Notes under the pieces: model-generated
What the model was told of the DNA's origin: nothing
Database searches by the model: none
Seen by the model: the letters and a program-made list of their open reading frames with translations, nothing else
Made by a program: the position numbers and the translations under genes
Part shown: piece after piece, positions 14,820 to 34,009 of the stretch
How the letters are laid out: every line of letters begins with the position of its first letter
How positions within the stretch are numbered: the first letter of the stretch is position 1
Assembly: GCA_964035545.1 (NCBI GenBank)
Contig: OZ037767.1
Span: 24,754,628 to 24,818,627 of the forward strand
Reading direction: 5' to 3'
From: Bugula neritina
Lineage: Eukaryota > Animalia > Bryozoa
Length of the DNA stretch: 64,000 nt

Positions 14820-15300
14820 AAGATCAAAGGAAGAGATAGTGTAACTGCGGCACGCGAAGAGCTACGATTAGAAACACTAGCAACTAGAAGAATGAACACG
14901 AGGCATACTCTTCTCATACGGCTACGCTTGTTATCCAAAAAGGAAAATCACAAATCGCTCATGTGCACATATGATGAACTTATGAAACAAAGCTCTGAAA
15001 GTATGACAGTCACCAGAGCAACATCTCGCGGTGTACCCCCCACAATCTATGCAAAAAATTCCCCTTATTACAACAGCTTTTTACCAAAGACAGTACGAGA
15101 ACTTAAATCTAAACTTTCTATACAGTAAAAGTGATCTACATTTACACGTAATGATGTGCACACTAGTCATTTGACAACTAATTGACATGTACGAGCTAAC
15201 CAAAGACTGCAACCTATTGAGGAGCACCACTTGCTATAACTATAAGTATTAGTATATCACATATGCTCTAGTGCTTTCTAAAGAAGAAGAGGTAAGAGAG
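14820..15300 (+). mobile_element. 5'-truncated non-LTR retrotransposon (CR1/L2-group-like) fragment: ORF2 C-terminus plus 3' UTR
   Basis: Open frame 14820-15128, KIKGRDSVTAAREELRLETLATRR...TR...YYNSFLPKTVREL, matches the SVT..L..L..L..RR / YxSFFPRTI pattern at the end of CR1/L2-like RT ORFs. The segment ends in a GAA/GA-rich tail. The clade assignment is inference. Confidence 0.65.
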
Positions 15301-15539
15301 AGGTAATATTGTTATTAAATATATTACTATGAGTATGAATATGATTATCATTAAATTTAATTGATAATAATAATGATTATCATTATGATCATCACTATGA
15401 CTATCATAATCATAATCATAATGATAATCATGATCAATCATCATCATGATGATTTATTTTTGATTTAATGATGTTCAATGACTTCAATATGTTGAAAGGT
15501 GATAGATTGTGACACATTTTAATTTTTTTAAAGCTGATC

Positions 15540-15910
15540 AAACACAATTGTAGCGACATTCATAATGTAACGGGAAAAGTGAGTCTCGCTCTCAGTTTCA
15601 GTCCGAGTCAGAATAATATGCATATGAGAATGCAAATGAAAATTAAAGTACACATAACGGAAACGGAGTAGGTTGGCATATGCGCATAACATTGTTATGG
15701 TTATAGAGTTATCCCCCTCGGGTTTTAACGCGTTAGTTTCGGCTTTTACGAGCTTGCCTCGTTTAAGGTGAGCGGTCCGCGGTTTTGTTACAACAAGAAG
15801 AATTTGGTCACGAATAAAGGCTATCTCCATAGGAATACAAAGCCATGCCATAGTCGCAAGTTCTTTTTTATTTTCACCGAAGTCTCAAAGTTTAAACCAT
15901 TACCATCGGT
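15540..15910. promoter_or_regulatory. CpG-enriched island; candidate bidirectional promoter for XRN1 (-) and LEKR1 (+)
   Basis: Local excess of CpG in otherwise CpG-poor DNA, located between two divergent genes. Both ATG exons are preceded by splice acceptors, so non-coding first exons are implied. Candidate plus-strand donor AAG|GTGAGC at 15767/15768. Confidence 0.5.
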
Positions 15911-16059
15911 ACTGATTGGTATAAGTATTGATATTATGATAACCATACTCACATTAAGTTTAATTATCACCTAGTAGTTCAGAAAATACTTGCTGGACAT
16001 TGTGATTGTAAGCTACTGACGAGACTATCACTATGAGTATGACTATGACAGTATGAGTA

Positions 16060-16332
16060 GGGTGTGACTAAAATGGGTGGCCACCCGGTGTCGCGGTCCG
16101 TGACACCCATTTTAGTCATAAGGGGGGGGTTTTGACTAAAATGGGTGTCGCCAAAAATTTTCGTTTTATTTTCACATTTTTAGACATTTGTGGCTGCTAA
16201 AATTGTTATTAAATAAATCTTCAGTGAATAATAAACATTTTACAATTGTTTAAACCAAAAAACATGAATAAATAATGATTAAATTAAATTAATTTTAACA
16301 AGAACTAAACCCGATAAGAGTTATCTTTCCTT
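16060..16332 (+). repeat. Left terminal inverted repeat of the MULE
   Basis: The outer ~90 bp are identical to the reverse complement of the right end except for the G-run (8 vs 7). Similarity then decays but is recognisable to AAGAGTTATCTTTCCTT at 16316-16332. Contains three alternating-orientation copies of TGACTAAAATGGGTG. Confidence 0.95.
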
Positions 16333-17950
16333 ATAATATAGCTAGCATATTCTATTTCCAACATGGAGCTAGAGTTGGAGTAGGTGTGATTTAGGAAGCC
16401 AACACAATTTGTTGTTACTTCTTTTAAGTTCTGTTACTGTAAAATTCCATTAGATACAAAGCTTCACAGTGTCACACTTTCTCTCCGAATGTCGTACTTT
16501 GAATATAAGCAAATAAAATATTAATATACATTTTGTATGTTGAGTTAAATTTAATCATAATGATTATGATATTCATTTGATAATCATCATCATCATTATC
16601 ATGATAAATTTAAAATTAATTGATTGCTGATGATGATGTTATGATGATGATGATAATCTCATGAGTAATCATTATTATTATTTTTATTTTAACTTTCATT
16701 TTGATTTGGTTGTAGTTTGAGTGAGACTAAGAGTAATACTAAAAGTAATTATAAACCTAAATCAGTAAATGGTTTAACTAACAGTTAGTGTTACGCTTAC
16801 TTGTTACTAAGTCAGTTGCTGTAGATCAAGATGAAGATGTAACACCAACTAACACTGACAGTCACTGTGACTGTGTCAAGTGAGACTGTTGGTCTAAACT
16901 TAGTCTTACCTTTTAACTTTTAAGTAATTTAGTGTTACTACATTCATTAGTGTTAGTATTAGTATATTACTTATAGTTTAATGCTTTTTACTTAGTTGAG
17001 TTCACCAACAGTAACGCTGTCATTATCATTATATTCATATTGTTAGACAATTTAATACATACATACATATAGATATAATTATAAATTACTAACATACTAT
17101 CAGTAGTGCTTAATCTTTTGATCCTCCTCAGTACTGGCACCTATAGGTATATATTAAATTTCCTCAAACTTCAAGACTGAAATATTGCCATTGCTAAGAG
17201 TTTATTAGCATTGCTTGTTACTATTATTAACAGGCAATAGTGTTGCTCACTAGATTTATTCGGTTTGGTTTTCACTTTTGTTGATGTTTGTGTTAATGAA
17301 GATGCAATCTCTTCAGGAGCGATTATACACACTCCAGCTAGTGCTTTTCACAAACACTCAAATAGTGACACTAAAATAGTGCATCATAAGGAATCTTTTT
17401 TAATAAATGATGTTTCAAGTCATTCCGTTATTTCAATCCATTTTTAAATCAACATTGTTTTCATTTTAGTTGGTGCAATGGCTAGTGGAAGTAGACCCCC
17501 CCCCCCAGTACCCCCTGCTAAACTTAACTCAATAGATTATGGTCAGGAACGGCAACTGTTTTGTTAATTAACTTTAAGTTGCATAGAAAATATATTGCAT
17601 TTAATTTTAATATTATATTTGAAATGTATGTCTCCTGTTTCTAATAAAGAATAAGCAAGTTTAAATATAATTTTTTCAATGACATATTAAATTGTTATGC
17701 TAATTGAAATTTTGAAACAGCTCAGCTGCTCTGACCTTTATTATCTGTAATTGAAGACATGTAGCTACAGATCAAAAACTGTATGGTGCAGCTAATATAT
17801 TAAAGCCTGTACAAAATTTGTCAGATGCACTGTTGCATCACTAGTTGATTTTACTGGTCTCAAAAGTTTATAGTACAGTTTTTCACTGGCAATAGAGAAG
17901 ACAACTTTTTCAGTGCACTGCAATACTTGTTTTTGTTTCGAATTTAATTC

Positions 17951-20277
17951 CACATTTGAAAATTTTAAAATTATTTGAATTAAAACAAAAATTTGTATAA
18001 AAATTATTGTAAGCTACTTTCCTGCCACACAGAAATTTAAAGGCCTCAAATAAAACAATCGTTTCCGTGCGACCAAATCCCCCTCCACTTTAGTTATCAA
18101 GGGGTGTTCTTTTTACTAAAATGGGTGTTGCAAGAATTTTTGATCTGTATTTTGCTATGTGAATAAATCTGATTTTATAACTATTATCATTAATTTGATT
18201 TTGAGTTTTGCACAAACTCAGCTAATTGAAATGCATGTACCTGCAAAGTAAAGATTAAAAAGATGAAAATTATGATGCACAATATCGAGGTCAATAACTA
18301 GGGGGTGTCGCGACGAGAAGTCAATACATATATCAAAATTTAAGTTTAATGATAATTTTTAAAGTTTTTCTAAATTAAAAAAAGTTGATATAAAGAAAAT
18401 TTCAGTAAATGAAATCTAAAACTAATCTGATGGTCATAAGTGCCCAAAAAGCCAAAAAATAGAGCAAACATTATAGCGACACTCATGCCCCCCTTCTATT
18501 GTAGTTATCCAGTGGTGTCTTTTTGCTAAAATGGGTGTCACGAGAATTTTTGGTTTGCATCTAACACTGTGGACAGATATAATTTTACAACTGACGTCAT
18601 TAAACTGATTTTGCATTTTTACACAAACTAAGCTAATTAAACTGTCGTGAAACTGCGACACAAGAATAAATAAAATTAAAATCATTTTGAAAATTCTTGG
18701 GGTCAAAAACTAGGGGGTGTCGCGAAGAATTCAATATGTGTATTTTAACTTAATTTCATTGATATTTTTCAGTTTTAGACATGCTGACTTATGAACCATA
18801 TACTTTAAACTTGTAAAAATACTAAGAGCAATATTAACAAACCAAAATGTTCACAAAATGTGAAAATAAAACTAAAAATCTCTGCGACACCCATTTTAGT
18901 CAAAACCCCCCCCCCAAATGACTAAAATGGGTGTCACGCTGATTTTTGCTTTATTTTTTAGCTTTCTGAACGGTTTTAGACACTACAAATTATGTAATAT
19001 TGAAACTTTTACTTGCTTTTACTAATTAAGATTATTAAAACTTTTAATACTCATAAATATTGGGAAAAAATGATGAAAACAAAACTAAAAGCAAAGAGAA
19101 GATAACTCTAGGGAGTGTCACTGACGGTTTCGGTTTTCATTATATTTTAATATTATTGCAAATTATTATATAATAATACTGTCATTTGGAGTGAAACAGT
19201 TATAATATATCATATTTTTCCTAAAGTTTTGATCAACAACTAATTTAACAACAAAAATTGCCAAAAAGCTAAAAAATAAAGCAAAAATCACCGTGACACC
19301 CATTTTAGTCATTTGGGGGGGTTTTGACTAAAATGGGTGTCGCAGAGATTTTTAGTTTTATTTTCACATTTTGTGAACATTTTGGTTTGTTAATATTGCT
19401 CTTAGTATTTTTACAAGTTTAAAGTATATGGTTCATGAGTCAGCATGTCTAAAACTGAAAAATATCAATGAAATTAAGTTAAAATACACGTATTGAATTC
19501 TTCGCGACACCCCCTAGTTTTTGACCCCAAGAATTTTCAAAATGATTTTAATTTTATTTATTCTTGTGTCGCGGTTTCATAACTTTTTAATTAGCTTAGT
19601 TTGTGTAAAAATGCAAAATCAGTTTAATGATGTAAATTGTTAATTTATATCTGTCCACAGTGTTAGATGCAAATCAAAAATTCTTGCGACACCCATTTTA
19701 GCAAAAAGACACCACTGGATAACTACAATAGAAGGGGGCATGAGTGTCACGATAATATTTTGCTCGGTTTTTAGGCTTTTAAAGCACTTATGGCCATCAG
19801 ATTAGTTTTAGATTACATTTGCTGTAATTGTTTTTAAATTCAATATTTTTAATTTAGAAAAAAACTTCTAAAATTAGCAATAAACTTAAATTTTGATCAA
19901 TGTGTTGACTTCTCATCGCGACACCCCCTAGTTATTGACCTCGATATTGTGCATCATAATTTTCATCTTTTTAAGCTTTACTTTGCAAGTACATGCATTT
20001 CAATTAGCTGAGTTTGTGCAAAATTCAAAATCAAATTATTGATAATAATTATAAAATCAAATTTATCCACATAGCAAAATACAGATCAAAAATTCTTGCA
20101 ACACCCATTTTAGTAAAAATAACACCCCTTGATAACTAAAGTGGAGGGGGGTTTGATCGCACGGAAACGATTGTTTCATTTGAGGCCTTTAAATTTCTGT
20201 GTGGCAGGAAAGTAGCTTACAATAATTTTCATACAAATTTTTGTTTTAATTTAAATAATTTTAAAATTTTCAAGTGT
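17951..20277. repeat. Internal long inverted repeat (arms ~17951-18965 and ~19265-20277, ~300-bp spacer) containing TIR-derived motifs
   Basis: The arms are reverse complements over ~1 kb with scattered substitutions (e.g. AAGCTACTTTCCTGCCACACAGAAATTTAAAGGCCTCAAA at 18011 mirrored at ~20180-20218). GCGACACCCATTTTAGTCAAAAC(n)..TGACTAAAATGGGTGTCACG at 18884-18938, and its mirror at ~19292-19343, match the TIR subterminal block. Confidence 0.95.
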
Positions 20278-20989
20278 AAAAGTATACAAAAAACTTAAGT
20301 AAACTCGAAAAAACAGGTATTGTAATTTAGACAATAATTATTATTGTTGACAATATAAAACCAGAATGTTACTCACTTTCCACCAGGTTGTTCTTAAAGT
20401 TATCTTCTCTTTAGCATATGCGTACTATGAATTGTTAATGAATTAAAACAGCTTGGATGTTTTGTTTACCATTCAGTTTGCCATGGTCATTTAGTGGCTG
20501 CCTTAATATTGATTGAACTGCACCCTACAAGAACATCATGTTATAATTTAGCAGGCATATCTTTACAATAATTAATAGCTTTTAAATTATAGAATATACC
20601 ATCTTGCTATTTCTATTGACATCACCAGGTAAATACTTGACTCATTTAGTTTTATAATTTGACTTACTAGTAATTACCAAAACTTAAATGAGTTTTGAGG
20701 TAGTACACCAGACTTGTCTTGTTTAATAATAATTTTTAGTAAGTGTTGTTGTGCTATGAGTTTTGAATATCTATAATTCTTAATTCATTCATATAAAGTG
20801 TAACTTTGCAATGTGTTAATTGCTATATAACAAAATATTTTATGCTTGTATATTTTCATTGGTAAATAAATGAAATGTCTCTTGATTTCACTATTATGTA
20901 CTTTTTCTACATACTGAGGATGTTCTTTTCGTTTAGAATCACAAGCTGTTTTTTATTTAAAGATTTCACAATTTAACTGATGGAGGTAT

Positions 20990-22057
20990 ATATTTAAAAT
21001 ATTGTTGTCTGTGTTTAAGAAGAGATGCAATTTCTTCAGATGTTGACTATCAAGACTCCATGCAGTTAGTGCAATTGCACAGACAACAGTTTCTGAGTAG
21101 TATTATCTTGAAAGCAAGTCTGGGCACTCAAAAAATATGTTTTAATTTTTTTTATAGAAATAAATATTATGTAAAAGTTTTTATCTCTTATCATAATAAA
21201 ATAAAGGGGATAGGTGCATTGACGAATTTATTAGAAACTACATGATATAAAGATTTACTATAGCCTACAAAGTTTTCTCCACATATTATTTTAATTTATA
21301 TACCAACGTTCTTTTTTAAATTTGTTGATAGTGTTAAATATTGGCCCAAAGCCTTCAAAATAATTATTATGCCGAAGTTCTTATAGATCAATAGTGATTT
21401 ATATGTTAACATTTTTGAGATTTGATGAAAGAGGCTTTCAAACTCTTTTGTTTGCGTCAGATTCTTAATTTTTACTGTTTGTTATGTATCAATACATCAA
21501 AGATTTTTTTAAAAGTTGTATATGAGTATATCTCTCAAACAATGGAACCCTTACATCAAACTTAAATAAATTCAGCATGAGATGTTTACAGTTGCTATAT
21601 TGCCATTCTATTGACCAACTGCACTGCCAATGTTGTGGTTGTTTGCACTAGAATGTGGCTATTGATGTTGTCATGATATTCATCTGTCCTAACAATCAAT
21701 ACCTTATATATAGATGAGCAGAAAAGCAGTGATGACAATTCAATTACCTGTTTAAATTTTTGAACTTAGAGGAGAATAACTTGATATATAAAAACCATTG
21801 CAACAAAATATTTTGGCACCGATGATGTAACACTTTCAGCATATTATATACATCACAATCTAAATGTTTGGAACACTCTGTTGACCAACATAATATTATA
21901 TTTAAAGGGTCCAACACTTCTAACCATAGCTTAAACCATTTTCATTCCGTAAGCTTTCTACACAAACGCAAATTAGCAAATGTTGGTATGGCTCATCCAA
22001 CAGCAGTGTGACAGCTTTCAACAGAATGCTATTTGAATAAACCGTTTTTACTTTTGT
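20990..22057 (-). pseudogene. Probable decayed, internally deleted paralogue of the OTU-MULE transposase gene
   Basis: Minus-strand peptide fragments resemble the intact plus-strand protein and occur in the same order, interrupted by stops and frameshifts, with a 59-nt GT-AG intron (21689-21747) at the OTU/transposase boundary. Aligned by eye only. Confidence 0.55.
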
Positions 22058-24134
22058 CTACAGAAATTAAATTGAATATATATTTAGCTCAACATCCAAT
22101 CTCCATGCTTCCTACATTCTGCACATACATAAACTGATAGCACCACAGCAAATTAAAGGGGGAATGTAACTGGTTGTGTGATGCCCACAACAGTCATCAC
22201 CATAAATAACATGACCTCATTAACCCTTCAAACTTCCTATTTATGCTTAGTTAACAGTCAGCAGGCATTACTAATCTACCTTGTGCTGACTATTAGATCT
22301 GTGGTTATGTCATTGTGGTTGGGGTGACTGTCATAACTCCTCTACCTCTACTAGACGATATTAATACTCTGAGGCTATGCAGTAATGTTTACTATGTTTT
22401 AGGATGCAATCATTGTGGTAATTTTATGGACAATCTTGACTATTTAGCAAATTTTAGGGACATATTTTTGCATGGTTTAGTAACAACAGCCATAGTATAT
22501 AAACTCTTGATAAATTTATTATAATCAGTTGGCAGCGTGATCTTAACAAATAACTGTTTTTATTTCAATTTAATGTTTTTCTATATAGTTTGCTGATCGC
22601 TGTGTATTCAGGACAAAAAGGTTAGTCACTTTATGCATATATTATATTATCTGTATATTATTGCTTTTACAGTAAAAACTTTCATAGCTCTTCTTTTATA
22701 TTGACTTTTGTAATTAACCACGCTAATGCATGCATATCATTTATATAACTATTATTTTAAACTATCATATAGTTTTTTTTTCAGCAAGTGTACAAATAAA
22801 CTGGTGGAAAGTACAACTTCTGCATATTGCATATATGTGTCATTTTACTTAATTTAGGACACACTCTATATCTCTATTTTTTAGCTACTTTTCACAATTT
22901 AACTGCTAATGTATATGATTTATTGCCCTAAAATAATGAAATAGTAACAAATACAGCTGAATAATTAAAGTTTCTTTTCAAATTTGGTTGATTTTCTATG
23001 TTTTTATCCAAATTCTTAAGTAAGTTGGTATGTGCGGGACGTGATGGTTTTTTCATCACGGTCGCGCATATATATTTAGCTCAAATGACAATGCCGGTGC
23101 AGTTTAAAGTTGGGAAATCCCCTCCCAGCCTTTTTCTGTTATGCATCATTATAATTAGTAGTACATAAAGTTACCACACATATAGTAAATTTCCATGAAT
23201 TCTGAGCAAACTACAATGTTTGGTCATAATTTGCACTAAATAGAGTACTAAATAGAGTAATATGACTCATATGAAAATTTGGGTGCATGCTTCCGGGCTA
23301 GTTACACTTGCTGTAACATATGCTGTATTTTTGTTCGGTAAAGGTTTTTATCTTATAAAGACAATTGAGAAGCATTACTGGGTGAAGATTATATAGGCTT
23401 AATGCTATATTACTTTATACTTGTGATTTTATAATAATTAGATTTTTACTGAGTTTGAAACGAGCAATAATAGGGAGAAGGGAAAAGGTCAGTAGTCATT
23501 AGTCTACCATTCTATAACCACTTGAATAATTTCAACACAATACTATTACCTGATTTAAACTAGTATGTTTTTATATTTTCTATTGTTATATTATATAATC
23601 TTACTGTTTTAATCTTGCACACTATAATGTAACTGCCCAAATTGTACCAACTTAAGACTTCACGGTGTTGCTTTCTGTAACAAAAGTGTTTAATAATAAA
23701 CTACATTTTAAAATTCCAGTAAATCTACCTCTATAGCGTCCTTGCTTGTTATTGAACCAATCAAAACTATTGCAATGCCTATAACAACTATAATGATATT
23801 ATTGCAAGAAGATGGCTTTGGAGCATTTATTAACTTTTCTTTTTTTTCCAATGTCATTTTATGTACATGAACAGGAACATTGCTTCAAACTGTTAAATAA
23901 ATTTACTAATGTCACATAACATTCCATTATATTACAACCATTTGATGTTTATCTAATTTTACCTATCATATAGCGATGAAGCTCATTAGTATACTTTTAT
24001 TCAATTAAATGCAGTACAACAAACAATAATTTAATTGCTATATAAGTACTGCCAAATTATCAAATTATTTTATGTTTAAAAGAAAAACATCAAATTGGTT
24101 ATCTCTTAAGCCAATATAACTTATTGTTTTTTAG

Positions 24135-27100
24135 GTTGAGAAAGTTGAATATTGTAGAATAATGCATTGGAAGAAAAGTATGTTGGCAAAGGTACAAATA
24201 TTTTGAAGCTTTAAACCTTCTTATATAAATAATAAACCAAACATTGCTGAATGGCATATTTTACTGAAAGCTATTTTAATTTTTTTTCAGTCCACTGCCA
24301 TTAACAATAGTTTTTAATAAATACTATAATTACCAATAGCTATAATTACTAGGCTTATACTAAATTGGTTAAAAAGTGATCAACAGCATGTAATTGGAGC
24401 ACACTTTTCTAAAAGCATATAATACAGCGAAGCATATGTCAAACTTTACCTAAACAGATATGATTTTGCTAGATACATGAAATTTAAGATTGCAACTTAC
24501 ATATTGCATGGTATATATATTATTTTGTTTTGTAGGAATGTTCTGTGAAAAAAGACGAGAATCCAAGTTCAATTATAAGGTATGTGTGTGTTGCAAACAT
24601 CTGTGAAAGAGGTTGATTGCAATCCCTGTTATATTTTTATCATGCAGAAGTGTATTTGAATATATGACTTTTGCAGTCCAATGTTACGGTTACCACCCGC
24701 CAAACATCAGCCACAGGCGCAGAATGTAAGTGACACAGACCAACCTCTTGCCTGGAATCAACTATGTTGCCAGGTATAGCTGTTAACTAACTCATTACAA
24801 TATCCTTATATGCTAACCTACGTAACAGGGTCTTTTTGCAGTATAAGCCTATATTGAAAATAGTATATACAAAGCATTTTATACCATGCCTGTTATAGTA
24901 TTCAATGTTATTCTCTGCCAGCTCGTAGTTATACGCCCCAATTGGCATAGCTGTTATCAATAATAACATTGGTATACCTAGTATGACAGAATAATAATTA
25001 TATTTCATAACTTCGAATTAAATATTTAGGAGAAACTGGTTGCTTAGACATTCAAGTGATAATTACAATTCTTATATCTATCAGTATAGTGTGTTGGCTG
25101 TAATTTGTTTCAACATTTTGATTGGTGCCTTTATAAGAACATTCCGTGACCAAAGCTATAATATATAATAATGTAATATAATAATAAAGTTCTGTTTTTT
25201 TGACGCAAGCTATTGTAAGCCCAGCTTGAATAGTTAGTAATTTAATATCGGTTGCAACATACTAATTAAAATTATTTGCGATTTACCAATGTTATCTAAT
25301 CTATGTGATTTTATTTAAAAGCTGCACTTTCAAAGATTAACGTATGTATTAATGCTGTTGAAAAGTTTAATGTTCTATTTGGTGTTAACAACTGCTGACA
25401 TATTATTAGGGTGCACTATTACATTTCTATTACTGCAGGACAGATCATGCATGTCATGTATGGGTCTGAACCACCCTAATCAACCAGCGAGTGAGAATAT
25501 TATTTATGCCAACAATCCCATGTCTCCAAATGTACAAGATCACAATCTGCCTTTGCCTAACTGCGCTGTAAGTAAACGGAACTGAACAATAATTTTGTTT
25601 GGATAAATTTTGAAGAGAGCAGTTCAGAATATTAAATGTGTTAAATTTGTTCATGAATATATTATTTCAATAATATTTTCTAGTAAAAGGCAATTTTATT
25701 ACTTTTGATAGGGGAGGTATTTATTTAATCCTTATTTTATTTAATTAAATTGCTTGTAGCCTACTGGATGGAAATCTACAACTAACTGTAGCTGCAACTT
25801 TCCCCATTTTACCATCAAGTTGACAGGGCAAAAAAATTATTATAACGGACGAAACTTGATTGAGCATGCCACAACTGAATCTTTGGGAAACAGATATTTT
25901 GAACATCAACACTCAACTACCAATCAAGTGCCAGATTCAAATGTTTTTCACCGTGGTACTACTGATGAAAGAAACAATTTGGAAAAAGTGACGACACCCA
26001 ACCAAATTAGAAATGATGTGCCCCAGGTAAAACTCTATTACAAAAAAGAAACAAGTTGTTTGAAGTGAACATTATTTATTTTGAATATAGGATTTTTAAA
26101 CATAAAATGCGTAAAACTTGTGCTTATATCTAAGTAGACCATTAAAGGCAACTGGAAACACAGTGGGTGTAAATATAAAATTATTTATTAAACTATATAA
26201 TACATAATATACCTTAATTTTCACGTGATCATTAACCTGCATAGAATTGGTGCCATAAAGTGAAACATAATATACATATAACATGTTAGAAATAGACTAA
26301 TTTTTTATATAAAAACAAAATAGTTTACTTGGCTTTTATGCAAATAAAGTAAAAACACAATGTTTCTCATTTATTTTTTTGTAATAAAATTCTAGTTTAT
26401 ATGGATATATTTCAACTAAATATATTAATTTGAACATGAACCTGATCATTTTTTATAGATGCGAGAAGAAGAACAACAAAGCCATAACATTGACGAAAAT
26501 CCTGTAGCTTCTAGAGAAATTGAAGAAGTTTCTGTTGTTCAGAAGGTAACCAAAAGCCTTAGTACTATATAAATTAATTTAGTACCATTTTTGTACAAAA
26601 TAAGCCTTCCCATAAAAACAACTTGGACAAGCTAAAAATATAATGTTCCTCAATATAATATAATTTACTTGAACTCACCCAAAATAAAGCAGCTAAAGCT
26701 ATGTAGGCTACATTATATGACCTTTTTGAAAAACAATCATCATGTGCGCTTGTTATTTTCTAAAGACACAAGATGACCAACCATCTACACACATTAGAGA
26801 AAAGCAATTTCAAGAAATTCAGACCCAGCTAGTAGCTTTGAGTGAGCCTGGCAGAGCCCTTGATCCCAAGATAGTCCAAAAGGTAAACGTCAACCTGCAG
26901 TGAAAAACAATTCTCAAACTGACAATAATTATAATTAAAAGAATTTGCAGTAATTTCACAAATATTTTCAATTTAAATAAATTCAATTATTTTAAAATAA
27001 AACATTGTCTGGAATAATCGAATGCCTTAGATCCAACTTTTGGTAGCAATTAATTTTTAAATTTATAATTCTTTCTTTGCTGCTAACAAAATCCAAAGAA

Positions 27101-30100
27101 TTTTTGTCTGAATAGAGAATTTCCAACCAAGTGTATTTCAATGATTTTATTGGTGATTTTCTACAGATAAACACTATTCAGAAGAGAAAAGAAAACCGTT
27201 TACAAAGTGAGACGGGAAATACATGTGATGACGAGATTACCAACAAATATTTGAGGTAAATCGACAAAAAATGAATCGATTAAAATAACTATTATTAAAT
27301 AATTCCATGCAAGAGAAAAGGGTATAATAATCTAAATTATAATACCTAATGATAATTTTATTTTTAAAAATGAGATGTGTCATGTATGTATGCATGTATG
27401 TATGTATGTATGTATGTATGCATGCATGTATGTATGTATATGTAAAACTATATTTTTCAGGAAAATAGGAATAGATGATATTAGAGCCATTAAAACTAAC
27501 GGTGATGGGAATTGCTTGTTCAGAGCGCTGAGTTGTGCTCTTTACTCAGATGAAAAGAGCCATGTAGAACTTCGTATTCGGGCATGTGTACACTTATATA
27601 ACAGCATGGACACTATAATGAATCGAAATAACCTGAGTAAATGGTTTGGCTTTGAGCTTGATGATGATGAATATTGTGCTCTACTTGCTAGTGCCATGAC
27701 ACAAGGTAATTTGGATTTCGGTGCAGAAAATTTGTCTAAATTGCTGATGCAAGATCACGCTATCGAAATTATGAGAAATGGGGAATATGGCAGTCAATGG
27801 TTAATAATTGCAATAGCTCATCTTTTAGGAATAAATGTACAAATTATATACCCTGTTCAAACACCACCACGATATATGAACTGTCTTCTAAGGCTCAATG
27901 AAAATAGTGATGACAAAATCATTCTCAGTTGGACTACTGCTGGTAGATATGTTGAAGACGAGAATAGTTTAGTTCCAGACCATTTTGTTGTGTGCACAGC
28001 AATGACCAGATCTCCGCAACATCATATGCCTATCAACATACAAGAAAAAGCAGATGCTGAAGTAAAGTTCAAAACTTATGGCCAATTCACTAGAATGTAA
28101 GTTTTGGAAAAGAAATAATTTCTGTAATTTTAGATTGTAACTGTTACTCTTTGTAAGATTGATTGGTTTATCATGCATGCTACTGAAAGGCCATATTGTA
28201 ACATGCAATGGCAACATATGACACAATTGTAATAATAACATACCTAAAATTCATATGATTTCTAGGCATACAACATAACTTTATTTATATAATCAATGTT
28301 GCCTGTGGTCAAAATAGTTAAGAATTATCTGACAGTTAAAATAAAAATAAATATATTTTTATTATTTTCAGGTCATGTCATCAAAATGTGCCAGCACTGC
28401 ACACTGACACACTGATAACCACTGAACATGCCATAGAGCTAACCAACAAACTAATAGAAGACACTATCACTTACGAGCAAGTAGTGACCCATAAACGATT
28501 AAATGGCATTATTTGTAGCGCTATATATGTAGTAAATGCTGATATTTACGAAATGAGAAGAGATGGCTGTGGGGTCTGGATAAAAACAAATTCCAGAGCC
28601 ACTCAAGTAAATGGAAAACACTTCATGTCAAGCAGAAGAAACAGCTTTGTTTGCAAAGGCAATAAGGGGTTGAAGAAAACGGAAATAACTTTTAAGAAAA
28701 GAGATGGAAGCTTTTTAGATTTATTAATTATTCAATATAGGTTTGACAATGCATCTGAAAGTAAAGTTATTGTCAAACCCCATGGAAACTCTAAAAGACC
28801 AGTTCCTTTCTTTCCGAGTGACAAAGCATTGCTGCAAGAGCTAAAGGACAAATCAACAGGCCTACATAGCAACGAAAACCCAGTGACAATATACAACAAA
28901 TCTGCCATAACTAAAAAACTGCATACAGTAAGAACAATAGGGGCAGTGCCAAGAGATGTAAAACAAATAAGAAATTTTAGGAACAAAAAACAAGCAGATC
29001 CAGTGGAGTCACTTTACGCATTGTATTTTGCGCAAAAGTCACATGATCAGTTTATCCAACAAATTAGTTTTGATGATGGAAATTTAACAGTCATCCTATA
29101 TACAAAGGAACAATTGAAAATATTTGAAGAATGTGCCATAAACTTAAGGAGGCCACTATACCTGGACACTACATTTAATCTAACGAACATGTACACAGTG
29201 ATATTTACATTGAGAGATGAGCGATTTGCTGGATCCCCAATAACAATTGGACCAATGATGCTGACTCAGAAAATGGATAGTGGTAGCTACACTGTGTTCT
29301 TCCAACATCTCATCAGAAAGTTGCCAAAGCTACAACATAGACAATTAGTATTTGTAACTGATGGTGAAAAAGCAATACTAAAGGCTCTTCAAATATTTCC
29401 TAAAAGACATGCATTTCGGTGTTTTTCACATGTGTACGATAACATCCAACGAAAGCTAACTCAATTATGCATACCAGCTAGCATAAAAAAGGTTATTTTA
29501 TATGACATTAGTCAAAAATTGAGTGGAGAGACAGAGAGTAAAATGAAAGAAGAGAGAAAAAACACCACTGAAAACTGGCAGAATATTAGTCGAAACAACT
29601 GCTACCAAAGTGTTTGCAAATTTATACACTATTTCAACGAACAAATCTGGGATTCTCTTATCGTAAATTCTAATGAAAAGATCCAAGAATACAATTTCGC
29701 GCAATCAACTTTTGTTACAACAAATGCCTCTGAGTCATGTAATGCAATGATCAAAAGATACATTCAAGGAAAAAAATTAACAGTGTCCAACCTTTGCATC
29801 TGCCTAAAAGAAATGGTTGATGGAATGTTAGAGGAAATGAAAAAAGGAATATCTGGAATATCGAAAAAATTTATCTTATTAGATACTTGGAAAGGCATAA
29901 AATTAGATCCAATTAGAACAATTAATAATCAAAAGAATATAGAAATTTCGCACGAAAATGAAGTGATGAATTTGCTAATGAGTAAAGCTAGTAATGCAGA
30001 AGTTGTACAAGTTAGGAACAGTGAAGATCATGTTTCAAAACTTGACAATTCACCACAATATGAAACTATAAAATCAAGGCACAACTCTCAACGATGCTGC

Positions 30101-30679
30101 AGCTGTGAAACCTACAAAAATTTGATGACCTGTGCACATATAGTGGCTGTTGCACAGCATGCTGGAGATAGCAGTTATTCCTCTATTAACTTGACACCAA
30201 AACCAAAGCTAAAAAACATTCTCGACAAATATGGAGGAAGAAAAAGAAATGAAAAGCCAAGGAAGAGGCGTGGAGCACAGAAAGATAGCAATCAGTCCAA
30301 AAAGAGTATTTTCCGAAACAAATCTGAAAATGGATATAGTAGTGTAACCGTAAAAAATATTAACAAAATGCAAGGATCTAGTGAAAATTCAGCTCTCACA
30401 ACTGCGAACAAATTAAACTCTACTAATCTAGAATTCATAGTTATTAGAAGAAGTAGGCGCATAACAAACTGCTTTGGATGTAAACAAGATTTTAATTTAT
30501 TTGACAGTTTTGTTATTAAACACCAACACAACTTTTTTCATATTGACAAAATGTGCATTAGGAAATCAAAAATCTATAGATGTATTTTTTCTAATACAGT
30601 GGTAGCAGATGGATCGATAGATTTCAAAAAAGTTCATCAGTTATGCTACCAAAAAGGTATTACAGTAATTCCAAGGTAG
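24135..30679 (+). CDS. Spliced OTU-protease / MULE transposase fusion protein (~1270 aa)
   Basis: Ten phase-consistent, stop-free GT-AG exons: 24135-24191, 24536-24579, 24677-24773, 25439-25567, 25760-26026, 26459-26545, 26766-26882, 27167-27255, 27461-28096, 28372-30679 (3831 nt). The first in-frame ATG is at 24162, but further upstream exons are possible. The small 5' exons are predictions without homology support. Confidence 0.8.
27376..27443. repeat. (TATG)n microsatellite in a transposase-gene intron
   Basis: Directly visible imperfect TATG/CATG run. Confidence 0.9.
27461..28096 (+). CDS. Exon encoding a vertnin-like OTU cysteine protease domain
   Basis: KTNGDGNCLFRALS..L..DE..H.ELR.R (Cys box with catalytic D and C), GEYGSQW..IAIAHLLGINVQIIYP, and IILSW...PDHFV (His box). 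The YP / W / xHFV pattern is that of the VRTN-like OTU group. Confidence 0.88.
28372..30679 (+). CDS. Exon encoding the MULE DDE transposase core with SWIM zinc finger
   Basis: LYLDTTFNL (D1), FVTDGEKA (D2), FRCFSHV (CxxH), TTNASESCN (E), CSCETYKNLMTCAH (SWIM CxC...CxH), basic NLS-like GGRKRNEKPRKRR and a C-terminal CxxC. The frame is uninterrupted. Confidence 0.93.
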
Positions 30680-31559
30680 TATATTTTAAAAATCATTTAA
30701 CTATAACTAAAAACATTGTTCAACAAGACCATTAAATCAACAAATGTCATTTACTAATATTTGCCTATACAAATGTTACTGTAGTTTTGTAATGCCCTGT
30801 TTAGCATTTTTTCCAATAGTATTGTCATAAGACCTTTGAGAAAAGTCTTTTTAAACAATTATATTACATTCATATTATATAGGTTTTGGTTGTAAATAAA
30901 TTATAATTGTAATCGAATAAACTATTTAAATGCCACATTCAAAAATTGTTGTCCAAAGTCTTGCAACAGGTAATACTACTAAATTCATAATCATTGGTGT
31001 TTAATGTTGATTATTCAATATAATTTAGTCATTAACAATCATTCAAATTATCAAATTTCGCCTTAATTCCATGAAATAAAGATTATTGAAATTAGGTCTC
31101 AGTCATGCTTATTCTAGACTTTGTGCACTTTATTATCTAGAATTTAGATCAAGGATATTTGGCTTGCAAATTGAGTTTGTTTGACGTGAAACTACGATGA
31201 CTCATTTAGGAATTACAGTAGCCTAGTGGTTTGCTGAACGTAAATCAAGCTGAAGTCTAAATAAACTAAAATTTAATAAAATAAATTAGTTGAGTAAAAG
31301 CATTGCAGAAAAATTAAACAGTGCTTTTGAATATAATACATTTCACAACCATTGTAATAATCATATACCCCATGTGATATTACAATACTAGTTGGTAATC
31401 ACATTAATATATATTAGCAAAAACTAAATTATAGTAAAAGAAGTTCTTTAAAATACACCTTAATTTTCTTCAATGGAGTTACTAAATTTGTGTAACTATA
31501 ATTGTTTACCAGACATGTCTGCAATTACATTAAACATATAAAAACTGATTTTAAAAGAG

Positions 31560-31612
31560 CCTACATACCTTACCTACCTACCTACTCACCCACCCACCAA
31601 CCTACCTACCTA
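31560..31612. repeat. Imperfect (CCTA/CCCA)n microsatellite
   Basis: Directly visible. Confidence 0.75.
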
Positions 31613-31751
31613 TTGGGTCAGCAAAAAACCCAAGCCATCGAAGATTGCTTGGCATATCATACACTACAGTTAACCATCATTATCATAATCATCATTGTAA
31701 TTATGAGTTGTTCTGATAAACTAAATTTAATGGTGTTAAAGTGACAGTTAA

Positions 31752-31955
31752 AACAGCAGCTGTGATCTAGATCTTGCTTAGTGAACACGAAGTCAAGGGT
31801 TGGAACCCCAACAAAGGCCATTGGTGATGTTAGGAAGAGCATACAGTCATAATTTCTCCAGTGCCTCATCTAAACATGCTCTTATCTTGATCTAACAAAA
31901 ACCCTTTTTATCAGGGGTTTCTCACTGTGATAGTGACTATAAACTTGCGTGAGTT

Positions 31956-31956
<1 letters not shown>
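31752..31956 (+). mobile_element. tRNA-derived SINE, copy 2 (nested inside the MULE)
   Basis: B-box-like GGGTTGGAACCCC. The body GATGTTAGGAAGAGCATACAGTCATAAT...ACCCTTTTTATCAGGGGTTT...GATAGTGACTATAAAC matches copy 1. Confidence 0.75.
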
Positions 31957-32132
<176 letters not shown>

Positions 32133-33017
32133 TTCAGCAAAATAGTTTTTTAAACCACATTGAATATGAAAATAAATATAATTTTGTTCATTTCATGTTG
32201 CAACATATATTTGAAGAAGTATAAAATAGTAGGTAAAACAAAACAATCATGTTCATTTTAATATTCAATAAATTTAAAAAACTTGACAAAATTAAAAATA
32301 AATATTAGTTTACTGGTCAGTTATCTAATTTTATATTTATTAAATCATTAATATATTAGTATTATTTTTGATAATAGTACTAATACAAAATCTTAAAGGA
32401 TATAATGATATAGTTGAATATGCTACAATAATAAAACAATAAGTCTAATGCTAATAGTAATACTAATAGTAAGTGTAATACTAATAGTAAAACTCTAGAA
32501 TACTAATACTAATAGTAAAAACCACTATGATTATAATATTAATTTAAATCCTATACTAGGTCTTATAGTTAAAGTTATAATTATGAAATTAAAAGTACAA
32601 CAATTAGATTTAGTATGACTAGTACTAGTACTATAGTAGTTTTACTCTACTTTTTAGCATTACTCGTATAATATTGCTTATTCGTTGTATACCCATACTG
32701 ACTGTATAGGTAGAATTAATCCTAGTATAAATAGGTACTACAATTGACTGTTGACATAACAAATTGAGATAGCTGTTAGCAGACTTGAAGTTACACTTAG
32801 ACTGAGCAAGACATACTCCTAGTCCTACTCACTGTAGCCTACTGTCACATTCACCATTGAGTTAATTTTATAATTCCAACTGTGAATTGAAATGAAAATT
32901 TAAATTCATTTTGCAACTAGTAGCAATTAGTTATACTTATAGTAATACTTATAACTTATACTTATAGTACTACCACCACCACCGCCACTACGACCTAGTA
33001 CTAGTTCTATTGATTGC

Positions 33018-33289
33018 GAAGGAAAGATAACTCTTGGTAGACTTTAGTTTTTCTAACTTTTTAAATTTTATTATGATAAGTTGGCGATTTTTGGTTTTAA
33101 ATTATTGTGAAATATTCAATATTTACTGAAGAATAATTTAACAATGATTTCAATGGTCACAATTGTCTAAAAATGTAAAAATAAAACGAAAATTTTTCGC
33201 GACACCCATTTTAGTCAAAACCCCCCCTTATGACTAAAATGGGTGTCACGGACCGCGACACCGGGTGGCCACCCATTTTAGTCACACCC
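33018..33289 (-). repeat. Right terminal inverted repeat of the MULE
   Basis: Reverse complement of 16060-16332; ends ...CACCCATTTTAGTCACACCC followed by the TSD. Confidence 0.95.
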
Positions 33290-34009
33290 GTATGAGTATG
33301 AGCATTGAGTAGGATTATGAATAGACACTAACTCTAAGTGACTAACTCCTATGTTGATAACAATTGAATTAGAATGACTTTAATCATAATGATCATGGTG
33401 ATAATGGTAGCTATAAATATGTATAAAAGATCAAAAAGGTAAATGAAGTCAATTTAAATTAAGTTTAAGCAGCTTATTTTAAATTTCAATTTAATTTGAA
33501 TTTCTAAACATTCTCAATTTAAATTTGTGAAATTTATCTTAATCAAATTTAATCAAAGTGCTAAATCTAAAATTTAAATTTGCGCACATTTTAGTTTTGT
33601 AACACACTTGAAATGCAACTTAATTTTATTCAAATTACTACTGGTATGTTTAAAGTTGAATTATAAGCATTAGGATTGCATTTTGATTTATACTTATGTC
33701 ATCTTATTAATATTTTCATAAGCTATTGTTTGTAAATTATAGTAGTATCAAAATACATTTTTCAAGCATTATTTTAAAACCATACAATCTGTGATCATTT
33801 TATATTACAGTTTGACTTATTTTTAGTGCATAAAGTTAAGAGATTTTATTATTCAAGCAATAGTTTTTGCTAAAATTCAAATTGAAGCTTATGGTAGTAA
33901 GATATTTTAGTTTTATAACTAAGCACCATTTAAATACTCAACTTATTACTAGTAAAAACTTCACAAATATAATTTTTACATATACTTTCAGATATACATT
34001 CAGTTAAAC

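Follow-up and report, generated by a model that had tools for sequence, protein, structure and literature searches.

Mutator-like elements (MULEs) are marked by TSDs of 8 to 11 bp (typically 9), TIRs of about 100 to 500 bp, and a transposase with MULE (DDE) and SWIM domains. Some plant MULEs carry multiple long TIRs (Ferguson & Jiang 2012, PMC3310237), in which additional TIR copies of at least 100 bp lie inside a TSD-flanked element. These internal TIRs have no TSDs of their own, and their tips are diverged or missing, such that cleavage remains at the outer end. The extra TIRs, which have been proposed to aid transposase recognition (PMC3310237), are mostly arranged in tandem beside the termini and are almost all found in non-autonomous elements, among which multi-TIR forms outnumber single-TIR forms.

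Related architectures are known from other hosts. The foldback-type Mutator elements FB of Drosophila and Tm1 of root-knot nematodes (PMC3169594) have 9-bp TSDs, variable-length composite inverted-repeat termini built of repeated motifs (terminal tandem motifs of 8 to 31 bp), and nearly fully self-complementary MITE-like derivatives. In maize, Mu killer (PMC3440606), an inverted duplication of TIRA and part of mudrA, is an immobile locus of its own with 1.3 kb of transposase coding sequence, and genetic evidence shows that it silences MuDR. The tandem-repeat MITEs DTC84/pearl (PMC3879986) and the foldback MITE Tetris (PMC4079207) contain up to five internal core repeats in a fixed order, each with a palindrome near its junction that is the proposed hotspot of copy-number change (PMC3879986, PMC4079207); these core repeats are unrelated to the element ends, and no autonomous partner has been tied to them.

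The element described here, from the bryozoan Bugula neritina, lies within a stretch of 64,000 nucleotides (the window) and shares features with each of these systems. As in plant multi-TIR MULEs, its internal copies share at least 100 bp of similarity with the TIR but lack its tip, there is no TSD at the borders of the internal copies or of the palindrome that contains them, and multi-TIR non-autonomous forms predominate in the family. Unlike those of plants, however, its copies sit 2 to 3 kb inside an autonomous element, face apart within a 2.3-kb palindrome, belong to a ladder of 390-bp modules, and occur in an animal host. The superfamily, the 9-bp TSDs, the composite termini, and the self-complementary derivatives are shared with FB and Tm1, but the Bugula unit, about 390 bp long, forms a small foldback in its own right, the large palindrome lies inside the element rather than at its termini, and the TIRs are not short-tandem-repeat termini when searched with Tandem Repeats Finder. 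Like Mu killer, the palindrome is an inverted duplication that includes Mutator TIR sequence and could form a long hairpin; in contrast to Mu killer, it contains no duplicated transposase coding sequence, being non-coding, resides within an active element, and is known here from DNA sequence. Its modules, unlike the core repeats of DTC84/pearl and Tetris, are TIR derived and present in the autonomous element as well. The Bugula element is thus an unusual variation on the known multi-TIR/foldback MULE architecture and not a new kind of element.

A palindrome within a recently transposed MULE

The host element is a 17.2-kb MULE (positions 16060 to 33289) that has the 9-bp TSD, the long TIRs, and the transposase domains of the superfamily. 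Self-BLAST pairs 16060 to 16332 with 33289 to 33019 over 275 bp at 83% identity, and the transposase contains the MULE domain (PF10551, 33.4 bits against a cut-off of 27.6 bits) and a SWIM match (PF04434) whose score of 18.1 bits falls slightly below the 19.6-bit cut-off. The features of the element are as follows.

16051-16059, no strand: left TSD, 9 bp, GTATGAGTA (right copy at 33290-33298)
16060-16334, plus strand: left TIR of the 17.2-kb MULE, 83% identical to the right TIR; outer 38 bp at 16060-16097, hairpin (motif, G-run, motif) at 16098-16150, and arm a1 to 16334
17905-17951, no strand: degenerate outer extension of the left arm
17952-18968, plus strand: left arm of the palindrome (flank, U1, U2, hairpin, and first 50 bp of U3)
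18113-18490: module U1
18298-18313 (plus), 18710-18725 (plus), 19502-19517 (minus), 19916-19931 (minus): mid-module motif B, CTAGGGGGTGTCGCGA
18523-18902: module U2
18742-18938, minus strand: pseudo right end P', matching TIR positions 39-234 in reverse complement; outer 38 bp absent
18919-19311: module U3
18969-19261, no strand: non-palindromic center, the core of U3, 82-88% conserved in MITEs
19262-20277, minus strand: right arm of the palindrome (last 50 bp of U3, hairpin, U4, U5, and flank)
19291-19485, plus strand: pseudo left end P, matching TIR positions 39-234; outer 38 bp absent
19325-19704: module U4
19740-20116: module U5
20278-20326, no strand: degenerate outer extension of the right arm
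27375-28100, plus strand: OTU protease ORF
28388-30679, plus strand: MULE transposase ORF with a SWIM-like finger
33020-33289, minus strand: right TIR of the MULE

A second copy (C4:22596146-22613366) has its own 9-bp TSD (ATACCATAC, unlike that of the window copy) and differs from the window copy by 2 substitutions, along with homopolymer and microsatellite indels, over 17.2 kb, indicating that the whole element, palindrome included, transposed very recently. The transposase frame is open and 100% identical in the two copies, and the autonomous copy is apparently mobile at present. In a genome search, full-length matches to the palindrome were confined to these two autonomous copies, and no palindrome-free autonomous copy was found for comparison, the remaining transposase copies being truncated. 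Two degenerate transposase copies (C4:12463744-12466584 and C3:6884858-6895407) were considered as evidence of the ancestral state and set aside as uninformative because they are truncated and have neither TIRs nor palindrome.

Repeat search, global alignment, and self-BLAST of the element agree on the inverted arms, and the original prediction of ~1-kb, high-identity arms spanning 17951 to 20277 was accurate. The arms match in 956 of 1,021 alignment columns (93.6%, with 9 gap columns), a divergence of 6.4% (65 columns) that is distributed unevenly, identity ranging from 82 to 99% per 100 bp; the non-palindromic center between them is 293 bp long. Beyond the arms, a weak, indel-bearing extension reaches about 17905 on one side and 20326 on the other and is bridged by a diverged copy (C5); its left part is missing 18 bp that are retained at 20278 to 20295 and in the C5 copy. 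Flanks past these points align locally with a score of 120, against 86 ± 10 (maximum, 114) in shuffled sequences, such that any longer palindrome is at best marginal and is convincing for the first ~45 bp only. Self-BLAST detected no similarity between the palindrome and positions 24135 to 30679 of the element, and the sole ORF of at least 90 aa in the palindrome is a TTG-start frame.

The region could fold as the ~1-kb hairpin that had been anticipated, with a predicted energy of -1533 kcal/mol (-445 ± 11 for shuffles) and 970 inter-arm pairs. Because this energy lies far below that of shuffled sequences and the window contains 16 occurrences of the motif ACTAAAATGGGTGT with 2 or fewer mismatches, where 0.84 would be expected, a chance origin is excluded. 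The palindrome was assembled independently at two loci, on contigs C3 and C4, and its arm-specific segments and right border (20200 to 20410) have 0 mismatches to contigs of run X1, this read support consisting of k-mer contigs. Run X1 may be the assembly's own sample. The palindrome is therefore confirmed as real: five ~390-bp modules, derived from the ends of the element and arrayed in mirror image, within a 17.2-kb MULE.

Modules derived from the inner part of the TIR

Each of the five modules (U1 to U5) is opened and closed by the motif TGACTAAAATGGGTGTCRC in inverted orientation, with the inverted motif ACTAAAATGGGTGT at both bounds. Adjacent modules share a 45- to 50-bp hairpin (motif, C- or G-run, motif) that corresponds to positions 39 to 90 of the true TIR, the outer 38 bp being absent, and each junction thus resembles back-to-back ends without the 38-bp cleavage end. 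The two pseudo-ends originally described are both present, one right-end-like (18884 to 18938, motif/C-run/motif) and one left-end-like (19292 to 19343, motif/G-run/motif), and they are, as had been proposed, TIR copies without the outermost ~38 bp. They constitute just two of four module junctions, however, and the palindrome as a whole is made of five modules; two further, more degenerate junctions lie at about 18473 to 18541 and 19687 to 19755. P' is composed of an a2 arm plus the C-run hairpin and P of the G-run hairpin plus an a2 arm, with each block matching TIR positions 39 to 234 over ~195 bp at about 81% identity; the segment from 19291 to 19372 is 90% identical to the right TIR.

The TIR itself contains three copies of one 14- to 19-bp motif in alternating orientation. 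Three motif contexts are distinguished (A, AAAATGGGTGTCRC; B, TAGGGGGTGTCGCGA; and outer, CCCGGTGTCGCGG); the core GGTGTCGCG is common to motif B and the outer TIR. The motif is 90 to 100% conserved among modules that are otherwise 60 to 75% alike. GGTGTCRC cores number 16 in the element, 10 of them in the palindrome and 6 in the two TIRs; none occurs in its other ~14 kb, and elsewhere in the window there are 2. A tandem-repeat array was considered and rejected: Tandem Repeats Finder reported no array in the TIRs or the palindrome, whose modules are too diverged (60 to 77%) and alternate in type. Loose ends of read contigs at 18905 and 19322 hinted at an element ending in the hairpin spacer, and a genome pattern search found none.

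The same modules in a family of MITEs

MITEs (miniature non-autonomous copies) of this family carry the same modules between full TIRs. The TIR-bounded elements form a size ladder (131, 518, ~1300, and ~1690 bp) in which 0 to 4 hairpin-bounded modules of these types, several of them shared with the palindrome, lie between complete TIRs, in the layout a1 a2' / U3 / a2 b' / a2 a1' and variants of it. Both TSD copies agree at 9 of 9 positions in nine elements (131 to 2603 bp) and at 8 of 9 in three more, and most copies checked have 9-bp TSDs. Genome-wide, there are 84 full termini and 62 perfect hairpins, whereas the reversed-pattern control returned none. The 131-bp elements consist exactly of outer part, hairpin, and outer part, and 42-bp relics consist of two termini fused at GGGTGGCCACCC; both show joining at palindromic sub-motifs. 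L020, a family member, holds a nested MITE, and family members thus do land in each other.

About 15 MITEs, each with a 9-bp TSD of its own, contain the central segment of the palindrome (18742 to 19485 or 18742 to 19701) between complete TIRs, the core of U3 being found in either orientation. The junctions and center are therefore family-wide and older than the window copy. The MITEs are not plain deletion derivatives of the present autonomous copy, from which their a1-adjacent type of a2 is absent. Nor are MITE types I and II separate relics of the left and right arms: in the b-module tree, type II is nested within type I, indicating that what sets the two types apart is inversion of U3 between the inverted repeats beside it. 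That 4-module MITEs predominate could stem from one burst of a master copy and not from an advantage of internal sites.

Origin of the mirror symmetry

The best explanation, and a probable one, is that the palindrome is a TIR-derived module array made palindromic by inverted duplication and now forms an internal part of an active MULE. In the a2 tree, both arms fall within the clade of a2 attached to b (100/98), where they are sisters (100/96), whereas the a2 left of U3 in the MITEs and in a diverged copy, C8, is of the other type, attached to a1. The arms are again sisters in the b-module tree (97/92), with the C8 copy next (94/90) and the MITEs outside, except for L008, which groups with the arms and C8. 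That the arms are of the same module type and sisters points to duplication and not to two independent elements, and inverted duplication of a subterminal module array appears to be the best reading of how the palindrome arose.

The C8 copy has a single arm (TIR-L, a2', U3, U4, U5, and flank, onward to 20534); we regard this as the older layout. The left border is also present in the C5 copy, whose divergence is about as old as the split between the two arms. In the proposed route, an inverted copy of about 1.06 kb right of U3 (arm a2, segment b, module U5, and flank) would have been added to the left of U3 in the autonomous lineage, with fold-back or template switching at an inverted repeat that already surrounded U3 as the possible mechanism. 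The result would be the layout U1 U2 / U3 / U4 U5. The arms would later have diverged by 6.4% in a mosaic pattern while the whole 17.2-kb element kept transposing, and the palindromic hairpins may have served as recombination or annealing points that changed module number. Gene conversion in an older palindrome can also yield sister arms, and the mosaic of 82 to 99% identity hints that conversion occurs. A simple fold-back does not account for the 1.57 kb that separates the left TIR from the left arm (16335 to 17904).

Possible functions of the palindrome

The concentration of GGTGTCRC cores in the palindrome (10 of 16) makes an uncleavable cluster of putative transposase-binding sites the leading guess for function, albeit a tentative one. 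The original prediction had suggested an enhancer, decoy, or autoregulatory sink; clustering and conservation of the motif render transposase binding plausible. The palindrome would then be a dense internal cluster of candidate sites, uncuttable without the terminal 38 bp, that could recruit or titrate transposase in the manner of subterminal repeats or internal TIRs; failing that, the palindrome would simply be baggage that the element tolerates.

It is unlikely that the palindrome serves to make long hairpin RNA, with read-through or TIR-like promoters driving its transcription and small RNAs against the TIR motifs of the family as the product, although this reading, a Mu killer-like self-silencing trigger in cis, concerns function and is compatible with an origin by inverted duplication. 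The predicted fold, the TIR-like arm sequence common to all family members, and the precedent of Mu killer itself are consistent with it, but runs guessed to be RNA gave only contigs that are 5 to 8% diverged from the palindrome and thus derive from other family copies, no Rfam family matched the palindrome, and an element with recent transposition and an intact transposase frame is not obviously silenced. We also think it doubtful that an active element here carries its own regulator, either a transposase sink or synapsis scaffold that would set the rate of transposition or a hairpin-RNA gene that would turn the small-RNA pathway of the host against all family members, a kind of "Mu killer in cis" moving with each new copy.

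Alternative origins

The original prediction also raised the possibility of a scar of two fused elements ([L..R'][L'..R]). We consider it very unlikely that two complete elements came to lie side by side or fused at this locus and later lost their inner tips. The junctions do run right-like and then left-like, recombination from hairpin to hairpin between neighbors would delete exactly both outer 38-bp segments, and the nested MITE in L020 is in keeping with it. The same junctions and center, however, lie between complete TIRs in the roughly 15 MITEs described above, and the P'-U3-P core, found in many MITEs and the C8 copy at 82 to 91% identity, long predates this insertion; moreover, the palindrome is present in both 17.2-kb copies despite their different TSDs, and its arms are tree sisters of the same module type. 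A fusion scar at the window locus is thus largely refuted, though fusion may be the deep origin of the modules.

There is very little chance that the palindrome is an independent foldback element or MITE nested into the MULE. MITEs of the family are foldback-like and share positions 18742 to 19701 with it, but its borders have neither a TSD nor the terminal 38-bp sequence and, in the diverged copies C5 and C8, run without a break into the internal sequence beside them; we rejected a nested insertion on the missing TSD and on the missing stand-alone copy, the genome search having found no full one.

Some library preparations are known to generate palindromes artefactually, and the read support here comes from k-mer contigs rather than spanning long reads, but a chimeric fold-back of reads is the least probable origin of a structure found at two loci on different contigs with differing homopolymer lengths, with arms 6.4% apart, exact matches in X1 contigs to arm-specific segments and the right border, and each border present in the diverged C5 and C8 copies.

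Implications

If the palindrome is functionless, it represents ordinary transposon structural evolution. Together, the 42- and 131-bp relics, the 1-, 3-, and 4-module MITEs, the older single-arm copy, and the palindromic active element form a natural series that shows how palindromic sub-motifs of TIRs can cause a DNA transposon to grow by modules, to collapse, to invert, and to form palindromes. The apparent current mobility of the element makes it a usable system for asking whether internal, uncleavable, putative transposase-binding sites help or restrain transposition and whether a long palindrome can be maintained during cut-and-paste transposition.

Results

The palindrome at 17952-20277 lies within a 17.2-kb Mutator-like element (MULE). 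This element is bounded by 275-bp terminal inverted repeats (TIRs), which are 83% alike by self-BLAST, and by a 9-bp target-site duplication (TSD), GTATGAGTA. The match to the MULE transposase domain, which falls in one open reading frame (ORF), exceeds the Pfam cut-off, that to a SWIM finger is borderline, and an OTU-protease ORF precedes the transposase ORF. An intact transposase frame occurs in only two copies in the 216-Mb genome assembly (contigs designated C1 to C9), the one in the window and one on C4 that has a different 9-bp TSD, ATACCATAC. Over 17.2 kb, the two differ by two substitutions and by homopolymer and microsatellite length changes. Because the C4 copy has another TSD and only two substitutions, these sequences indicate that the whole element, palindrome included, moved very recently.

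Locations of the autonomous element
16060-33289, MULE with 275-bp TIRs, 9-bp TSD and transposase ORF
C4:22596146-22613366, second copy

The chief differences between the 17.2-kb copies are 8 bp in the length of an (AT)56 microsatellite (32021-32132) and 1 and 2 bp in the G/C runs of hairpin spacers (16115-16122 and 18903-18912, respectively), and these length polymorphisms could be used as copy-specific markers. The element's surroundings (15300-16059 and 33290-33400) are AT rich and minisatellite-like, with ATGAGTATGACT-type repeats, and its TSD is one of the repeat units of this array. A stretch of ~80 bp within the MULE (17474-17557) has at least 30 further matches across the genome, at 77 to 96% identity; read contigs part from the element precisely at 17557, and the stretch probably represents one end of a small, unrelated repeat that is nested here. 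Part of 16335-17904 recurs at C5:9041755-9043145.

Repeat search, self-BLAST of the element, and global alignment give the same result for the palindrome, bearing out the original prediction of a 2.3-kb inverted repeat with ~1-kb arms. In the global alignment, 956 of 1021 columns (93.6%) are identical, and the arms enclose a nonpalindromic center of 293 bp. Identity is mosaic, at 97 to 99% in some 100-bp blocks and 82 to 90% in others. Given an 18-bp indel at the arm border, which is spanned by a diverged fragment on C5 (the C5 copy), weak homology extends ~45 bases farther outward per side, to ~17905 and ~20326; no significant likeness was found between the flanks outside these points. Near the center, a right-end-like block is followed by a left-end-like block, as predicted. 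The ~195 bp continuing from each block matches TIR positions 39 to 234 at ~81%, and both blocks lack the outer 38 bp of the TIR, close to the ~40 bp originally proposed. Both predicted pseudo-ends are thus present, but their count falls short, as the palindrome consists of five modules.

Features of the palindrome
17952-18968, left arm
18969-19261, center
19262-20277, right arm, inverted relative to the left
18884-18938, right-end-like block (motif, C-run, motif)
19292-19343, left-end-like block (motif, G-run, motif)
18113-18490, module U1
18523-18902, module U2
18919-19311, module U3
19325-19704, module U4
19740-20116, module U5

The modules, of 380 to 410 bp each, are marked off by copies of the motif ACTAAAATGGGTGT, which occurs 16 times in the window (two or fewer mismatches) versus 0.84 expected. 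Fourteen of the 16 are within the element, three per TIR and eight in the palindrome, and their orientation alternates throughout; two more copies, at ~18475 and ~19740, are degenerate. U4 and U5 are the reverse complements of U2 and U1, respectively, and U1 and U2 are old paralogues (~73% alike by self-BLAST). Where neighboring modules join, there is a 45- to 50-bp hairpin, predicted at about -27 to -31 kcal/mol, that corresponds to TIR positions 39 to 90. A second motif, B (CTAGGGGGTGTCGCGA), lies at mid-module, and its core, GGTGTCGCG, recurs in the outer TIR. Of the element's 16 GGTGTCRC cores, the palindrome accounts for 10 and the two TIRs for 6, which leaves none in the other ~14 kb; elsewhere in the window (47 kb), there are only two. 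Conservation is 90 to 100% in the motif and the bases next to it, and the rest of the modules are 60 to 77% alike.

The palindrome was assembled at two loci with differing homopolymer lengths. The arms are 6.4% different, and contigs of sequencing run X1, which may be the assembly's own sample, match arm-specific stretches with zero mismatches (18284-18677, 19714-19904, and the right border, 20200-20410).

A pattern search of the genome recovered 84 full termini and 62 perfect hairpins of this family, and genome-wide controls with reversed patterns found none. Pairing of full termini yielded elements of the following sizes.

TIR-bounded elements in the genome
42 bp, 2
131 bp, 2
518 bp, 2
780 bp, 1
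1072 bp, 1
1300-1307 bp, 2
1665-1704 bp, 8
2603 bp (nested pair), 1
3,700-8,100 bp, 5
17,200 bp, 2

Among the MITEs checked, TSDs match at 9/9 positions in nine (131 to 2603 bp) and at 8/9 in three more. Splitting the modules into three arm types and the U3 core allowed MITE layouts to be read.

Arm types
16150-16334, a1 (TIR arm)
19342-19485, a2
18540-18741, b

The three-module layout is a1 a2' / U3 / a2 a1', and the common, four-module layout is a1 a2' / U3 / a2 b' / a2 a1'. From these layouts, the family's MITEs have as their core the central 744 to 960 bp of the palindrome (18742-19485 or 18742-19701), at ~85% identity. In a rarer type, U3 is flipped, and this type nests within the common one in the tree. 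Copies L026 and L020 (inner element) differ from copies L015 to L019 solely in which way the U3 core faces with respect to the b-containing module, and the two types look like a flip inversion between the inverted repeats bordering U3. The inner element of L020 (C4:8986256-8988858) is a 1680-bp MITE (TSD GTTTAAAGT) sitting 173 bp into a TIR arm that belongs to a different member of the family (TSD AAATTAAAA). Five solo ends of ~260 bp (outer 38 bp, hairpin, and a2 arm; C8:996778, C8:3602259, C7:12124705, C5:3336955, and C2:21329532), each with 87% identity to 19291-19507 across the same 221-bp span, may be carried within another repeat or segmental duplication.

In the smallest elements, the parts are joined at palindromic submotifs. 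Those of 131 bp consist solely of outer 38 bp, hairpin, and outer 38 bp, and are either the family's smallest mobile form or an in-place, hairpin-to-hairpin collapse of a longer copy. In those of 42 bp, which are perfect palindromes, two termini overlap or are fused at the palindromic 12-mer GGGTGGCCACCC; these elements could have been left behind by collapse or excision.

Smallest elements
C2:19780959-19781089, 131 bp (L038), TSD 9/9
C1:7654427-7654557, 131 bp (L039), TSD 8/9
C6:1183643-1183684, 42 bp (L040), flanking 9-mers 7/9
C9:287612-287653, 42 bp (L041), flanking 9-mers 5/9

Discussion

The a2 arms, all placed in one tree, form two clades, those joined to b and those joined to a1. Both arms of the window's palindrome are in the b-joined clade (100/98), as sisters (100/96), and the a2 left of U3 in MITEs and in an older single-arm element on C8 (the C8 copy) falls in the a1-joined clade. 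The tree of b modules likewise pairs the two arms as sisters (97/92), with the C8 copy next (94/90) and the MITEs outside this set, except L008, which groups with it. The C8 copy has one arm only, in the order left TIR, a2', U3, U4, U5, flank, and internal sequence. In the outer arm, identity is 92.1% between arms, ~91% between each and the C5 copy, which already has the left border, and 86 to 88% between each and the C8 copy.

The simplest history would have four steps. An older element would have held the subterminal array [a1 a2'][U3][a2 b'][U5], from which the MITEs derived; in the autonomous lineage, ~1.06 kb right of U3 would have been copied inverted onto its left side, presumably because the preexisting inverted repeat around U3 allowed fold-back priming or template switching; and the arms would then have diverged, with some patches staying alike. 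Comparison of the copies makes this right-to-left polarity fairly probable. The history leaves 1.57 kb (16335-17904) without account. Alternatively, an older palindrome may have been homogenized by gene conversion.

The original prediction also offered, as one option, a scar of two fused elements. Its observation held, and its interpretation is supported in part, but fusion at this locus fails because the module junctions are family-wide, common to both 17.2-kb copies and the MITEs. Deeper in the family's past, the modules themselves could reasonably have arisen by hairpin-to-hairpin recombination of neighboring elements. Nested insertion is rejected: the borders have neither TSD nor terminal sequence, and a genome search found no full-length match outside the two autonomous copies, nor the stand-alone copy with its own TSD that would have spoken against the prediction. 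The left flank is continuous with the arm at C5:13853286-13854444 (in L037), and at C8:4415796-4423867 the right arm continues into internal sequence to 20534. L037 (C5:13852791-13854444) is rearranged, joining 16581-17040, an arm like 19863-20277, and the reverse complement of 17949-17557; its 17040/19863 joint is also present in an X1 contig, and it retains the 18 bp lost from the window's left arm.

As to function, our leading guess is that the palindrome is a cluster of putative, uncleavable transposase-binding sites, since binding-type cores are concentrated in it and stay conserved among diverged modules, all MITEs larger than 131 bp keep modules, and there is precedent in plant multi-TIR MULEs, whose internal TIRs are not flanked by TSDs, show diverged tips, and are proposed to help transposase recognition (PMC3310237). 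Another, less favored idea is that the palindrome would be a source of hairpin RNA, for which Mu killer is a real precedent (PMC3440606). The ~1-kb hairpin expected upon transcription is indeed predicted by folding, with 970 interarm pairs and -1533 kcal/mol, versus -445 ± 11 for shuffles. However, k-mer contigs from presumed RNA runs are 5 to 8% diverged from the palindrome and so come from other copies, and the element, having just moved, gives no sign of silencing. An Rfam search of the region returned no match.

Since the smallest elements are joined at palindromic submotifs, module number would change at the hairpins, via recombination or annealing during gap repair, a role like that proposed for palindromes at the repeat junctions of the clam MITE DTC84 (PMC3879986). 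On the sequence comparisons made here, the palindrome represents an array of TIR-derived modules that was duplicated in inverted orientation within an active animal MULE. The nearest known systems are plant multi-TIR MULEs and foldback-type Mutator elements; unlike both, the array here is internal, palindromic, composed of 390-bp modules, and carried on an autonomous copy.
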